Below, piece after piece: positions 32 through 56,055 of a DNA stretch of 64,000 nt. A program made the translations under genes and the position numbers. Below the pieces are notes generated by a model. It was not told the origin of the DNA, searched no databases, and saw nothing but the letters and a program-made list of their open reading frames with translations. The stretch lies in the sequence record MT708547.1. One strand, 5' to 3'. The number at the start of each line of letters is the position of its first letter. The first letter of the stretch is position 1.

Positions 32-149
32 ACATTTGTAACTATTCAGTACTGAATAATTCAATGCATATATTATTTCAGTACTTAATCATTAGCAAAC
101 TATTAATTTCAATATCTCCTTTAGATAATATTTCGTATCTTATATTAAC

Positions 150-208
150 AAAAATCTGAATAGCATGTCAAGAAAAATCTGGATTACCAACGAGAAAAAA
201 TCTGGATT
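150..208. repeat. Three AAAAATCTG(G/A)AT(T) repeats (another at 989-1000)
   Basis: 150-161, 172-185, 194-208; core AATC-TG-GATT is an inverted repeat. Confidence 0.7.
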
Positions 209-270
209 TTAAAAATTTTGAAATGTCGTTTATAGTTCAGGAAAAAAATGAAATTATAACAAGAAAATTG

Positions 271-299
271 TTGACATGGATATGCTGCCATTATATAAT
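271..299 (+). promoter_or_regulatory. Consensus sigma70 promoter
   Basis: TTGACA-17-TATAAT. Confidence 0.9.
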
Positions 300-305
300 G
301 TAATC

Positions 306-720
306 CTCAAGACGAGAGAATGTTCTCTCATAGAAAATGCGAAGAAGCCGAGTTTATCTGTCCCTGCGTGAGTGGGCTAACATTTGAATAGGACAATACG
401 TAGATGAATGAAAAAGGTTTAAAGGGAAGTATTTGATTCCCTGTAGTATAGTTAATGAGTTAGTACTGATATAGTTTAATCATTGAGTACTACTGTCGCA
501 AAGGGAAACCTTTGGCTTCCATGGGGAGTGATGACAGAAGGGCATTATCCTCCATATAGAGTTACTGCGAATAACTCCATAAGTTGGGTTGTGGCAAACC
601 TCCTAAAATAGTGAATCTACAGTACTACTGCTTGGTAGTACTGCTTTTAATTTAAAGAATCCTCTCCGCCAAGAAAGGTGCATGTAACTTGAACATGTGA
701 ACTACGGGAACAGTACTGAA
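306..720 (+). ncRNA. Candidate ~400-nt structured ncRNA
   Basis: Perfect promoter, no ORF, many stems (GAGAGAA/TTCTCTC, GTAGTA/TACTAC, CAAAGG-GAAA-CCTTTG, GAGTTA/TAACTC, CAGTACTAC/GTAGTACTG). Confidence 0.55.
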
Positions 721-791
721 TTATTCAGTACTAATTCCTCCCCAAATTCTGGATACAATGATGCTAGGCTTCAGTTAGTACTGAGTGAGAA

Positions 792-901
792 TGATAATGA
801 TTCTCATTTGAATTGGATGAGAATGATTCTCATTTACTATTGCAAATGATAATAGATTGCATTTACGAATGGTTCTCATTCGCAGATGATAATGATTCTT
901 A
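792..901. promoter_or_regulatory. Cluster of 3 strong + 2 weak Fur-box-like sites
   Basis: TGATAAT-G-ATTCTCA 792-806, TGAGAAT-G-ATTCTCA 818-832, TGATAAT-G-ATTCTTA 887-901; weak 847, 864. Confidence 0.75.
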
Positions 902-929
902 TTTGAAATTGATTTTTCCGATTTTTCCC

Positions 930-995
930 ATTAGCCACCCTTCAGCGTAGGGTTAATTTTTCCCCTGCCGAATCGGTTTTATATTTTCAAAATCT
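930..995 (-). ncRNA. Short-RNA family copy A
   Basis: - strand TTGTTT-17-TATGAT (1030-1002); ACCCT-8nt-AGGGTGG core. Confidence 0.45.
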
Positions 996-1036
996 GGATT
1001 AATCATATCAGTACTAACCAAGATAAACAATACCCC

Positions 1037-1051
1037 TTTACAAATCTTTAC
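1037..1051. promoter_or_regulatory. TTTAC-N5-TTTAC box (CpxR/RstA-like)
   Basis: TTTACAAATCTTTAC = revcomp GTAAA-N5-GTAAA. Confidence 0.6.
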
Positions 1052-1077
1052 AAAAAGATTCTAAATGTGAATACAAA

Positions 1078-1092
1078 TGATAATGATTCTCA
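1078..1092. promoter_or_regulatory. Fur-box-like site
   Basis: TGATAAT-G-ATTCTCA. Confidence 0.75.
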
Positions 1093-1099
1093 TTTACAG

Positions 1100-1149
1100 T
1101 ACTGAATACTTTTTCCCACGCCCTGGCGTCTCCGGTTCCTCCCGTCTAT
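1100..1149 (-). ncRNA. Short-RNA family copy B
   Basis: - strand TTGACT-16-TATAAT (1183-1156); CGG-GAGGAA-CCG stem, divergent core CGCCAGGGCGTGGG. Confidence 0.5.
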
Positions 1150-1251
1150 ATAAACATTATACAGTACTGAATAATTAAGTCAATACTATTTTTGCAAAAA
1201 GATTAAAATAAAATACTTGCAATCCTGGTTAGTACTATATTATAATGTTTA

Positions 1252-3666: not shown

Positions 3667-3960
3667 TGACTAAATTATATATTCGTTTCTGTTTTGCCTG
3701 GTACTTGTATAATCTACAAAATGGTTATACAGTGAAATAATATATATTTTTACTGATATACTGTAAAACGTCCTGTAAACGATTATGGGACGTTTTAAGG
3801 AATATTGGTACAATGTTAGTACTGAATGATTTAAAACGGCTTACAGTGGCTTACAGAGCGTTTAAAAAGTACTTGACGCAATAATGTAGTACTGGCATAA
3901 TTCATCTATACCAAATAGCAAAGGGAATCAGTACTGATTCCAATATAAGGAGTAACCAAA

Positions 3961-6254: not shown

Positions 6255-6344
6255 TTTTTGTTCAAAAAAATATTTTAATTTATTTTTTGAACGGATTTCA
6301 AAAATCAGGTATAATAATAAAGGGTGTTAATTACAAAGACCCCC

Positions 6345-53229: not shown

Positions 53230-54090
53230 ATGAAATTATATTTTTTATTTTCTTTTGCTGAAGATATGTATGGATTTGCAGAAGTTGCAGAAAGTGATGG
53301 AATCTCATCACATACCAGGCATCAAAAACACCCACATGAGTTTTATAATAATTTATTCATGTTTATGCAATATAAAATTTTCTCATCTGAATTTGATAAT
53401 TTAGATCACCCATGGGAATTACCTTTAATTGATATTCCAGACGAATACGTATTTCAGTTCATGTTAATGGGTCTGGAAGACTATGACTTAGTTGTTTATA
53501 ACTACAGAACTAAACGCATTATGCTTGGAACTCACGATAGTTCCATTGTATATGTTTCAAGTACTAATGATGAGTTAGCGTCTGATGAAGGTAATTATAG
53601 AAAATCTTATGGTTATATAGAAAATGATAATGATTTTATTTTAGATTTTCGTGTATCAGAAGAAGAAAGAAGAAAAAGAGAAACTTATCAAGTGGAGTTA
53701 AAACCAGATAATGGTTATAATGAAATTTTAGAAGTACTTAAACCATACTACCTTGATATTGTTTATAAGAAATATAAACGCCTGCTAAATCATCTTAGCG
53801 AAAAAGAACCAATTGGTTTTGAAACCAATTCATTACGTAATAGCATCATATTTCCACCTAGAGTAATGAAATATGGTGAAGTTTCTAAACACAAGATGAA
53901 ACTATATCCAGATGATATTGAAGTTCTATATCATTCGTGGTTGAATAATGATGAACTATATGTAGAAAATAAAAAGTTAATGCGTATAAGTAATAATGAT
54001 GATAGATTGCTACAAGCGTGGTATAATGATTCATATTCTGCATTTACTGACAGTAATTCTGAGTATTGGAAGAATACAGGACAAAACTAA
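53230..54090 (+). CDS. Hypothetical protein with internal FQ-like motif
   Basis: IPDEYVFQFML. Confidence 0.8.
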   Translation: MKLYFLFSFAEDMYGFAEVAESDGISSHTRHQKHPHEFYNNLFMFMQYKIFSSEFDNLDHPWELPLIDIPDEYVFQFMLMGLEDYDLVVYNYRTKRIMLGTHDSSIVYVSSTNDELASDEGNYRKSYGYIENDNDFILDFRVSEEERRKRETYQVELKPDNGYNEILEVLKPYYLDIVYKKYKRLLNHLSEKEPIGFETNSLRNSIIFPPRVMKYGEVSKHKMKLYPDDIEVLYHSWLNNDELYVENKKLMRISNNDDRLLQAWYNDSYSAFTDSNSEYWKNTGQN

Positions 54091-54094
54091 ACCA

Positions 54095-54121
54095 AGGACG
54101 GCGTAAAAACCGTCCTTTTTT
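54095..54121 (+). terminator. Terminator
   Basis: AAGGACGG-CGTAAAAA-CCGTCCTT-TTT. Confidence 0.85.
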
Positions 54122-54125
54122 AATA

Positions 54126-54133
54126 TATAAATA
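54126..54133 (+). promoter_or_regulatory. Possible T4-type late promoter
   Basis: TATAAATA; also TATAAT at 54158. Confidence 0.35.
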
Positions 54134-54139
54134 TCTGAA

Positions 54140-54610
54140 CGAAAAATAGATTTAAGATATAATGTATGTAATTACAAGGATGTTGGATGCACAGGATGTG
54201 CATACACTAAAAACCTGATCCACTCGAAACAAGTAGAGGGCAGATGAGTATACCAACAATACGCCGTGTAGAGGATACCCGTTTAGGCGAGTCGACACGT
54301 TAAAGGGCAAAGGTAGCACGATTGCCCCAATCTCTCAGGAGATTGATAGGACGCGAATCCAGTTAAGTCTGGACATTAAGTGTAAAAAGGGAGATTATTT
54401 TCTTTTAGATATTTTGGAAATAATCACAGTATTGAATTGCTTGAATAGTTCGGTACTGAAGTGCAAGTATGTTTAAACTTGTGACCGTTGCATGTGACTG
54501 CGATAAGGGGAAACCGGGCAACCCGCCTCTGCCTAATAAATTAAATTTATTAGAATTCGCAATTCAAGGAATTTCGACAGCTACGAGCTTCAAGGCTTAG
54601 CTTTTTTATT
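54140..54610 (+). ncRNA. Candidate ~450-nt structured ncRNA
   Basis: GC-richer ORF-free island; GGGCAA/TTGCCC, CAATCTC/GAGATTG, TCCAG/CTGGA, CAAGT/ACTTG, GNRA loops, ends AGCT..AGCT-TTTTTT. Confidence 0.6.
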
Positions 54611-54777
54611 TCTCATCCCCTCCCTGTGGGGGGGATGAAAATATCTCGTGCAAACGCCTTCAAGTATTGAAATTCACGAAGTGAATTGAAATTACTTGTT
54701 CTGTAGTCAAACGACAGTGAGACGTGAGAACAAGTAATTTCTGCATGTATCAACGAAGTGACAACGAGTTGATACAT
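54611..54777. repeat. Cluster of long perfect hairpins
   Basis: AATTCAC-GAA-GTGAATT; 15-bp GAAATTACTTGTTCT/AGAACAAGTAATTTC; 10-bp ATGTATCAAC/GTTGATACAT. Confidence 0.8.
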
Positions 54778-54832
54778 AGCACTTTAAAACATTATTGAAT
54801 TCAATAATTAATATTATTATGGTTTTAAAGAA

Positions 54833-55402
54833 ATGAATTTAGAAGAACAGAAGAAAATCGCTTCAAGAAAACAAAAGAAAGGGATTGATATTAAGTACTA
54901 CAATACTGATTTTGATTTAGTACTAAATCCAGATGTCACATTTAGTGGATATGTAGTAAGAACAGAAAAAAATACATTGTCAAATATTAAAGAATATGAA
55001 AATGGAAAAGAGATTGGAATCATTTCATTTAGACCTACACAAACCCCCACCATAAATGTTGTTCGTTATAAAAGCTATTATGAAGAACGATACGTAAATG
55101 GAAATCTTTCTTTGCAATTCAATGCAACATGTGATTCATTATTCGGTGAATATATAAAATATGATCAAAATGGTGATATTTTAATGAGATATTACTATAA
55201 TAATAATGTTAATTGTACTGAAGAAATCATGGATTTTATTGGATTTAATGGTACAATTGAAGAGTTTAAATATTATACATTTAAAGAAGATGAAGAATTT
55301 AATATTTTAATGCGTTATGGGAGTCACTTTAAATTATTAAAAGAACAAGAAAAAAAACCTCAGTACTTTGACGGTTTATTTGAGAGGTTATATAAAAAAT
55401 AG
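54833..55402 (+). CDS. Protein with MORN-variant-like repeats
   Basis: YENGKEIG..YVNGNL..GEYIKYDQNG. Confidence 0.5.
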   Translation: MNLEEQKKIASRKQKKGIDIKYYNTDFDLVLNPDVTFSGYVVRTEKNTLSNIKEYENGKEIGIISFRPTQTPTINVVRYKSYYEERYVNGNLSLQFNATCDSLFGEYIKYDQNGDILMRYYYNNNVNCTEEIMDFIGFNGTIEEFKYYTFKEDEEFNILMRYGSHFKLLKEQEKKPQYFDGLFERLYKK

Positions 55403-55410
55403 GGAAATAA

Positions 55411-56055
55411 ATGAGAAAAGGAAGTAAAAAAAGTGATTTAGTTCACGGATTTGGTATAAATGATATACATAGAGATTCAAAATTAGATAGTGATTATTAT
55501 AGATGTTATGGTATATGGGTTGGATTTTTGCGTAGATGTTATAGTAATAATAGATCTCTAAAGAATATTTCATATACAAATACTGTTGTATGTGACGAGT
55601 GGAAATACTATTCAAATTTCAAAATATGGTATTATAATAATTACATAGAAGGTTATCAAATAGATAAAGATGTAATTGGTGGTACATTAGATATATATTC
55701 ACCAGAAACGTGTGCTTTCATACCTAACTTGATTAATAGCTGTATTATTGATGGTAATAGAAAAGATAAGAGTACGCCAATTGGTGTTTCATTATCTATA
55801 TATAAAAACAATGTCAAGTACAGAACCTGTATAACAAAATATGGTAAACAATTAAAAAATTTCGGTTTATATGATAATCCGTATGATGCACATAAAATTT
55901 GGCAAATTGAAAAACGTAATTATCTTTTAGAATTAATTGATAAGTACAGTAATGATGTAGTACCAGAAGTCATTCAAGGATTACAACGACGAGTTGATAT
56001 TTTGAATAATGATATTTTAAATGGAATAGAGACAAAAACAATAAGTAAAGTATAA
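55411..56055 (+). mobile_element. Free-standing HNH-type homing endonuclease with AP2-like C-terminus
   Basis: W..FLRRCY..VCDEW..F..W..IDKD..YSPETC.F..PIGV..FGLYD..AH. Confidence 0.7.

Follow-up and report, generated by a model that had tools for sequence, protein, structure and literature searches.

A probable new family of large structured non-coding RNA genes in RaK2-like jumbo phages and integrated elements of enterobacteria

The ROOL and GOLLD RNAs form RNA-only multimeric cages, and OLE, an ornate RNA of ~600 nucleotides (nt), is found as a membrane ribonucleoprotein in Firmicutes. Here we describe an RNA element in the genome of Klebsiella phage Muenster, a RaK2-like jumbo phage of the genus Alcyoneusvirus with 346,937 base pairs (bp). 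The DNA analysed comprised bases 1–64000 of MT708547.1 (64,000 nt, hereafter the window). The stretch at ~54170–54780 (+) of the window is copy A of three paralogous RNA genes in Muenster. We are highly confident that these genes represent a real and new family of non-coding RNAs (ncRNAs) that are structured. Overall, the observations are probably best explained by an undescribed, self-contained ncRNA gene of ~600 nt, the product of which would adopt a compact fold and act in trans.

ROOL, GOLLD and OLE are the closest RNAs in kind, but nothing points to homology with any of the three. The new RNA shares with ROOL and GOLLD a length of ~550–800 nt, many helices, pseudoknots and conserved unpaired nucleotides, and all three are encoded as stand-alone genes of phages or prophages. 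It differs from both in matching no Rfam model up to E 10, in not lying beside tRNA genes, in belonging to phages of Enterobacterales and Xanthomonas, and in reaching up to six paralogues per genome. OLE is similar in length and complexity. Unlike OLE, the new RNA has no Rfam match and no adjacent Oap-like partner genes, and it is phage-borne and multi-copy, with Gram-negative hosts. In our own reading, the GAUGA/CUGA around helices H3 and H4 may resemble a k-turn-like junction. Group I introns, RNase P RNA and transfer-messenger RNA (tmRNA) are of comparable size and, like the new RNA, have cores with pseudoknots and peripheral modules inserted at varying points; in contrast to these, the new RNA has no Rfam match, is not called as tmRNA by ARAGORN, lacks flanking exons, has its own promoter and is multi-copy. 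Likenesses to hammerhead, group I and RNase P RNAs seen by eye (CUGAU...CGAAA...GAUGAG; ACAGAG.AACCCG) were rejected: the core nucleotides misfit and the Rfam models were silent. Finally, RNA sequencing of PA5oct, a distant RaK2-like relative, has defined ncRNA001–004, transcribed regions of 236–619 nt free of open reading frames (ORFs), for which no structure is reported. The model of the 3′ core described below (R1) found no match anywhere in the PA5oct genome; hence, there is no link to these ncRNAs.

Searches for known RNAs were negative throughout. With Rfam 15 (including GOLLD, ROOL, HEARO, OLE, raiA, group I/II introns, RNase P, 6S and tmRNA), no covariance model scored at or above its family gathering threshold in the 64-kb window. 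With E allowed up to 10, the element gave nothing beyond noise, and two well-conserved homologues likewise returned noise alone. The copies in bacterial chromosomes (see below) matched no family either, in a scan that detected the signal recognition particle RNA as control. ARAGORN found no tRNA or tmRNA in the window or in 20 loci around homologues. In the literature, we found no description of the RNA family, nor transcriptomes of these phage genera. An earlier reading of the window from its letters alone (the sequence-only reading) had proposed an unrecognised class of large structured ncRNA and had suggested an Rfam scan for GOLLD, ROOL, HEARO and others. None of these families matched, and the very strong covariation reported here bears the proposal out.

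The fold was derived by comparing homologues. A total of 57 instances were reduced to 38 non-redundant sequences and aligned in three sections, the 5′ domain (A3), the 3′ core (A2) and the tail (A4). The 5′ domain of copy A has the following features:

54181–54186 (+): 5′ strand of pseudoknot PK1, UGUUGG, pairing with the H4 loop at 54253–54258
54187–54203 (+): variable hairpin P2 (AUGCACA-GGA-UGUGCAU); in copy B and other phages, another hairpin sequence stands at this site
54215–54243 (+): H3 (outer CUG/CAG plus inner helix) with the conserved loop YGAAAAnGUA, from covariation
54243–54262 (+): GAUGAG junction and hairpin H4 (GUAU/AUAC); H4 is 100% paired
54253–54258 (+): H4 loop CCAACA, the 3′ strand of PK1, from the PK1 permutation test
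54265–54299 (+): H5 (CGUGU/ACACG) enclosing the conserved AGAGGAUACCCG and H6, ~97% paired
54305–54327, 54333–54342 and 54358–54373 (+): three hairpins of the Alcyoneusvirus-type 5′ domain, from compensatory changes between copies A and B and the R2 alignment
54345–54349 (+): conserved GAUAG, from the R2 alignment
54387–54393 (+): invariant AAGGGAG, from invariant columns; the AAAGGGA of the sequence-only reading falls here

In the helices of this domain (H3, H4, H5, H6, H7, H9 and H10), 91.1% of the cells were paired versus 29–45% in slid controls, and 25 of 33 pairs were altered on both sides. H3 by itself was 92.3% paired, with 7 of 8 pairs changed on both sides. The model of the 5′ domain (R2) scored 88 bits (E 1.1e-23) at 54210–54394. 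The parts that define the domain in the family, namely H3 with its GAAAA.GUA loop, the GAUGAG junction, H4/PK1, H5/H6, GAUAG and AAGGGAG, are all present in copy A. PK1 was examined by permutation: its mean longest helix was 7.47 bp versus 5.01 ± 0.21 bp with permuted partners (0/1000 as high). The leader strand of PK1 is CUGAUUGA in most copies and UGUUGG in Muenster, and many compensatory variants occur. In its middle part, the 5′ domain of Muenster represents a divergent variant.

The 3′ core and the tail comprise the features listed next; the list also includes the one ORF annotated within them:

54393–54425 and 54427–54458 (+): hairpins Pa and Pb, from alignment and folding
54461–54484 (+): hairpin Pc, GTGCAAGT...ACTTGTGA, 92% paired, 4/5 pairs changed on both sides
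54469–54600 (+): annotated ORF of 43 amino acids, CPT_Muenster_135 (GenBank)
54483–54491 (+): invariant GACCGUUGC, of which GUUGC at 54487–54491 is the 5′ strand of pseudoknot PK2
54499–54561 (+): three-way junction of Px (54499–54503/54557–54561), Py (54506–54510/54526–54530) and Pz (54533–54553)
54579–54607 (+): terminator-like hairpin followed by U6 (54602–54607); several homologues have a canonical terminator hairpin here
54613–54638 (+): tail hairpin of 11 bp, C-rich/G-rich, 95.5% paired, with G-C to G-U changes only
within 54613–54666 (+): conserved single strand of the tail, GAUGAAAAU...CAAAC.CcUUCAAGUA
54671–54687 (+): tail hairpin
54688–54741 (+): long tail hairpin with the conserved loop AAACGA.AGUGA
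54744–54777 (+): last tail hairpin, paired in 92% of cells, with two-sided changes in 4 pairs

The 3′ core (Pc, PK2 and Px-Py-Pz) was 96.4% paired, counted in the same way, versus 40–51% in slid controls, and 19 of its 26 pairs (194 cells) had changed on both sides. R1 scored 112 bits (E 1.7e-26) at 54438–54594, where Pc, the GACCGUUGC/GCAAC pseudoknot, the Px-Py-Pz three-way junction and the loop GAAAC.G..CAACCCGC, which together define the family core, were all found. Pc is a genuine helix, with a sequence that is free to vary within the family. The Pb loop, UUGCUUGAAUAG, fits the family consensus uUG.U...aUaG. PK2, formed by GUUGC (54487–54491) with GCAAC (54518–54522), was 100% paired, and 2/5 of its pairs covary (C-G/U-A and G-C/A-U). 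Px, Py and Pz were 89–100% paired, with changes on both sides in 13 of 16 pairs, and the Py loop is the conserved GAAACCGGGCAACCCGC. The tail gave 80.9% paired cells versus 40–55% in slid controls (13/22 pairs changed on both sides). The hairpin with U6 at 54579–54607 may mark the end of a ~440-nt form.

Thus, the whole RNA contains at least 15 helices and two pseudoknots, all with compensatory changes, and 54178–54780 folds to −195.5 kcal/mol (z = −8.35 versus shuffles). Segments that are unpaired and yet invariant include GAAAA.GUA, GAUGAG, ACCCG, GAUAG, AAGGGAG and GACCGUUG as well as GAAAC.G..CAACCCGC, GGGGGGAUG and CAAA.C.CGUCA. A covarying fold combined with such segments bears the hallmarks expected of a compact tertiary structure. 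In relatives, an optional hairpin module with the loop UACAAUAUAG and flanks AAAUUUUG/CAAAAUUU is inserted at either of two sites, after AAGGGAG or inside helix Pz, depending on the copy; the UACAAUAUAG module is absent from the window and from the Muenster copies. The element stands out from its surroundings by a GC content of 0.37–0.41 compared with 0.24–0.33 in the flanks, and the structured, GC-richer island between a terminator and a U-tract that the sequence-only reading had noticed is real. The proposed span of 54126–54610 does contain the structured RNA, but its end has to be moved: in alignments of homologues, the conserved element reaches ~54779, ~170 nt further.

The same region had been called free of ORFs. 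This is not strictly so, given the annotated CPT_Muenster_135. No ORF over the core was kept in frame and length across the 38 homologues; 12 of them had none, and the others used three frames and different ends. CPT_Muenster_135 is therefore most likely a spurious call inside an RNA gene. The annotated ORFs CPT_Muenster_135, 248, 249, 250 and 491 all lie inside the three Muenster RNA genes (those outside the window at 128938–129732 and 314648–314779) and are probably all spurious. Within the helices, G-U pairs outnumbered A-C mismatches by 131 to 75, which modestly favours the + strand as the transcribed one.

The other two copies in Muenster lie outside the window, at 314.3–315.0 and 128.9–129.6 kb. 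Copy B (MT708547.1 314326–314957, 87% identity by blastn against the whole Muenster genome) is directly downstream of a gene for an RpoD-like sigma factor. Copy C, at 128.85–129.6 kb, was found by model and profile searches; three small ORFs are annotated over it. Between copies A and B, the 3′ ~450 bp, from ~54385 to the ribosome-binding site of the next gene, are identical save for a GG indel (window 54385–54835 versus MT708547.1 314570–315020), as if part of the RNA gene had recently undergone gene conversion. Divergence is clearly greater in the 5′ ~260 bp, and here the differences are mostly compensatory: CGTGT/ACACG in A versus GATGC/GCATC in B, GGGCAA/TTGCCC versus GGATAGG/CCTATCC, and CCAG/CTGG versus CTGG/CCAG.

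Distant blastn and pattern scans of IMG/VR also placed the element in other RaK2-like phages, among them Asteriusvirus, Mimasvirus, Eneladusvirus, XaC1 and Munch. In the records of relatives that were opened, the copies occupy unannotated gaps of 600–840 bp. R1 counted three copies in Muenster, four in 121Q and five each in CBB, GAP32, BF, fHe-Yen9-04, XaC1 and Munch; the IMG/VR pattern scan gave up to six motif matches per genome. Each RaK2-like jumbo phage has 3–6 ancient paralogues of the family, the number being 4–6 in those other than Muenster. Weak R1 matches of 15–17 bits in other genomes look spurious. A loose pattern applied to metagenomes returned false positives for the most part: of 80 loci, only 17 passed R1, and several of these lie on contigs of jumbo-phage size (~230–370 kb). 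All phage copies are on the + strand because ~85–90% of the genes are also on that strand. In a tree, the copies clustered by paralogue rather than by genome, with 121Q and the Alcyoneusvirus A/B pair as exceptions; it follows that the paralogues are older than the separation of these genera. In the five-copy genomes, neighbouring copies are 34–94 kb apart (mostly 52–94 kb) and more evenly spaced than random (P ~0.0001–0.02 per genome, from the standard deviation of the gaps). The genomes tested, CBB, GAP32, BF, fHe-Yen9-04, Munch and XaC1, are syntenic, so that the tests are not independent, and the three copies of Muenster itself lack even spacing. A trivial alternative to a positional function, as the source of even spacing, would be that direct repeats lying close together collapse by recombination. 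The genes downstream differ among copies and are sometimes convergent, which argues against a leader specific to one gene.

Copies also occur in bacterial chromosomes. A scan of bacterial genomes gave nine loci, and blastn against complete E. coli genomes gave two more; the hosts, all Enterobacterales, include Serratia, Citrobacter, Enterobacter, Silvania, Buttiauxella and E. coli. All nine scan loci matched both models, with 100–109 bits for R1 and 129–158 bits for R2, and one E. coli locus matched the family profile over nearly its full length. The bacterial copies are single in each element and lack annotation. Most of the loci examined have an integrase gene immediately upstream of the RNA and in the same direction, the integrase being a large serine recombinase in some cases and a tyrosine integrase in others; most of these RNAs face a convergent gene for a CI-like repressor. 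Besides the interchangeable serine and tyrosine integrases and the CI-like repressor, we found no conserved neighbour protein at the bacterial loci. One E. coli island with a copy adjoins ffs. In the tree, the bacterial copies interleaved with those of phages, falling into one separate clade and, in two cases, near a paralogue group of the jumbo phages. The presence of the gene in phages as well as in integrated elements thus suggests that it behaves as a mobile cassette common to temperate elements and lytic jumbo phages.

The start of the cassette contains the following signals:

54094–54117 (+): bidirectional intrinsic terminator, a stem of 8–9 bp followed by a T run, which ends CPT_Muenster_134
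54126–54133 (+): TATAAATA, a T4-late-like motif that is not conserved in the aligned homologues
54135–54163 (+): promoter, with a −35-like CTGAAC (54135–54140), a 17-nt spacer and a −10 TATAAT (54158–54163)

The terminator is the left boundary of the RNA cassette. The sequence-only reading had taken TATAAATA for a late promoter. The motif is present, but it is probably not the promoter of the RNA because it is not conserved in homologues, and the late timing is not supported either. Instead, every copy is preceded by the consensus tG.aAC...TGnTATAAT, in which TATAAT is invariant and TGAAAC conserved. The class is that of a sigma70-like promoter with extended −10; it would place the start site of copy A near 54170. 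The identical motif precedes the copies in bacterial chromosomes, which suggests that the host sigma70 polymerase may recognise it. In the paper on phage CBB, the same promoter was described as a 'divergent RpoD-like promoter'. The motif recurs at about 20 other sites in Munch and, as TGAAC/TGAAAC plus TGnTATAAT, at 6286–6323 and 3782–3826 of the window; judged by this recurrence, it appears to belong to a general promoter class of RaK2-like phages. Parts of the element (54255–54467, 54357–54606, 54505–54717 and 54587–54749) were covered by short contigs of low depth from three wastewater metatranscriptomes and one organism transcriptome, all in runs chosen by the element itself. Two of the RNA runs had no other genuine coverage within a 5.7-kb stretch, and DNA carry-over is possible.

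Two protein-coding genes flank copy A, one of 286 amino acids that ends at 54090 and one of 189 amino acids that starts at 54833. About 600 bp downstream of copy A is a gene for an I-HmuI-like 'DNA binding protein' (window 55411–56055), and a gene for an HNH endonuclease (MT708547.1 127806–128390) lies ~500 bp upstream of copy C. Their proximity may be fortuitous, or it may hint at homing-type mobility.

From the conserved promoter, the covarying fold, the lack of a conserved ORF or neighbouring protein and the unrelated or convergent downstream genes, we infer a stand-alone RNA that acts in trans. The host sigma70 polymerase would transcribe it, either early in infection or from an integrated element. 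The transcript would fold into a compact tertiary structure and work as an RNA or RNA–protein machine (a scaffold, an assembly or something ribozyme-like) in the interplay between phage and host or between phages, rather than as the leader of any one gene. To this trans-acting mechanism we give somewhat less than an even chance. Slightly more tentative is the proposal of a new ornate, pseudoknotted class of ~600 nt that is exchanged as a promoter-to-terminator cassette and makes up an RNA machine, be it a ribozyme or a particle that assembles itself or scaffolds proteins, while the five evenly spaced, anciently diverged paralogues of jumbo phages perhaps differ in specificity or have a position-dependent role in the replication or organisation of the genome. 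Several points weigh against a trans-acting RNA. The strand signal is weak, and in the 5′ domain A-C exceeds G-U. Its 3′ end is not fixed, since the terminator-like site is internal and a conserved tail follows. Support for a transcript consists of thin, low-depth contigs from element-selected runs, and these public data are too thin and too biased by that selection to demonstrate transcription. A role that depends on position would likewise agree with the even spacing of five distinct paralogues and with their having been kept for so long.

The element could be a cis-acting origin, the folded transcript of which would form a persistent RNA–DNA hybrid and prime the leading strand as do the transcripts of T4 oriF/oriG and ColE1 RNA II. 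These, too, are promoter-driven, non-coding and several hundred nt long. T4 has several dispersed origins, at least five of which act early with promoter-derived RNA primers (PMC3016281), much as five RNA copies are dispersed in RaK2-like phages, and several evenly spaced origins would serve a 350-kb genome. In addition, ancient paralogues are kept at syntenic positions, one Munch copy is located at a strand-switch point, and a conserved U tract ~440 nt downstream of the start precedes a G-run hairpin. We nevertheless consider origins of this kind unlikely. The R-loop origins of T4 have no common sequence or fold and need none in the RNA, and they require an A+T-rich unwinding element (PMC3016281). 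The new RNA, in contrast, has a conserved tertiary-type architecture of loops, junctions and two pseudoknots, and it has no A+T-rich element right after the promoter, the region downstream being GC-richer. Moreover, the GC skew shows no inflection at the copies except at gene-strand switches, single copies beside integrase and CI genes in integrated elements would be at an unusual site for an origin, and the spacing itself counts for less given the synteny of the five-copy genomes and the uneven copies of Muenster. A regulatory role in cis is about equally improbable in our view. The RNA would then be a long leader that controls read-through of an internal terminator, or processive antitermination (as HK022 put), for the genes downstream. 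This would account for the terminator-like hairpin and U tract inside the element with conserved sequence after it, for the fact that in Muenster no clear terminator separates the tail from the next gene at 54833, for one paralogue group in which the RNA abuts the start of the next gene, and for the orientation of most copies along the genes that follow. It is at odds with downstream genes that are unrelated among copies, with the one copy each in 121Q, CBB and GAP32 that faces convergent minus-strand genes, with the convergent CI-like repressor gene in the bacterial elements, and with a length of ~600 nt and two pseudoknots, which far exceed known antitermination RNAs. We hardly credit a DNA-level repeat (a recombination hotspot, a protein-binding array or a remnant mobile element) or a gene for a small protein. 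Multiple dispersed copies, the 450 bp of 100% identity between copies A and B that suggest gene conversion, small GenBank ORFs in all three Muenster copies and the HNH or I-HmuI-like genes near two of them would agree with such explanations; hundreds of compensatory changes that keep helices and pseudoknots on one strand, ORFs that are not conserved and a conserved promoter before every copy do not.

The sequence-only reading had paired the element with an RNA at the left end of the window (306–720), as two distant members of one class, possibly one early and one late. A consensus sigma70 promoter precedes the left-end RNA (TTGACA 271–276, a 17-nt spacer and TATAAT 294–299), and a terminator lies at 620–649 (hairpin 620–643 plus U run). 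The hairpins on which the pairing was based, GTGCAAGT..ACTTGTGA at 54461–54484 and GTGCATGT..ACATGTGA at 678–700, are both present, share their flanks and differ by one compensatory swap; they do not make a covarying module, because one A-T/T-A difference between only two sequences is not population covariation. ATAGGAC...AAAGGGA likewise occurs in the same order in both RNAs but is uninformative, as we estimate that two regions of such size would share ~16 7-mers by chance. The computed expectation of 0 for the hairpin and 7-mer patterns is not a fair test, the patterns having been defined afterwards. Visual inspection suggests a Pb-like hairpin in the left-end RNA (446–497, loop UGAUAUAG) and, after it, a possible three-way junction in which a GAAA tetraloop takes the position of the pseudoknot loop, a likeness without statistical support, and the best non-self R1 match of the window falls in this RNA. 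That match scored only 8.6 bits (E 5.5 over the window), covers 441–584 with broken pairs and does not include the 678–700 hairpin. R2 reached at most 4.3 bits on the + strand at 306–720, nothing above noise; the whole-family profile hidden Markov model (nhmmer) hit only 54108–54806 in the window, and blastn gave nothing at the left end. Furthermore, the 678–700 hairpin lies downstream of the terminator of the left-end RNA and is invariant in orthologues, whereas Pc ranks with the family's most variable helices, and the invariant 3′ flank of Pc, CGACCGUUG, is absent at the left end. By blastn, the left-end RNA matched only Alcyoneusvirus-type Klebsiella phages. A class shared by the two RNAs is therefore very unlikely, and the second and third members in Muenster are copies B and C.

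Some further observations concern the left end itself. The left-end RNA (window 271–655) falls inside the terminal repeat called by PhageTerm and hardly varies among five genomes of Alcyoneusvirus-type phages; that of phiKp_21 lacks 30 nt (about 504–533). Around it, at window 40–1200, there are many CAGTACTG/AGTACT palindromes, and GAGAATGATAATGATTCTCATTT-type repeats are found at ~780–1100. These may be protein-binding or packaging-related repeats of the terminal repeat.

New classes of large folded RNA are rare beyond the ribosome, RNase P, introns and tmRNA, and OLE, GOLLD, ROOL and raiA each opened new biology. The family reported here is tractable: its diverged copies number in the dozens, more than 50 of its pairs covary, and it is amenable to deletion, probing, expression and imaging in E. 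coli systems. It connects two lifestyles, that of lytic 350-kb phages, including those of Klebsiella, E. coli, Salmonella and Erwinia, and that of integrated elements of enterobacteria. For annotation, the consequence is that several 'hypothetical proteins' are probably spurious ORFs within RNA genes. Finally, the even spacing of five copies raises the question of how giant phage genomes are organised.

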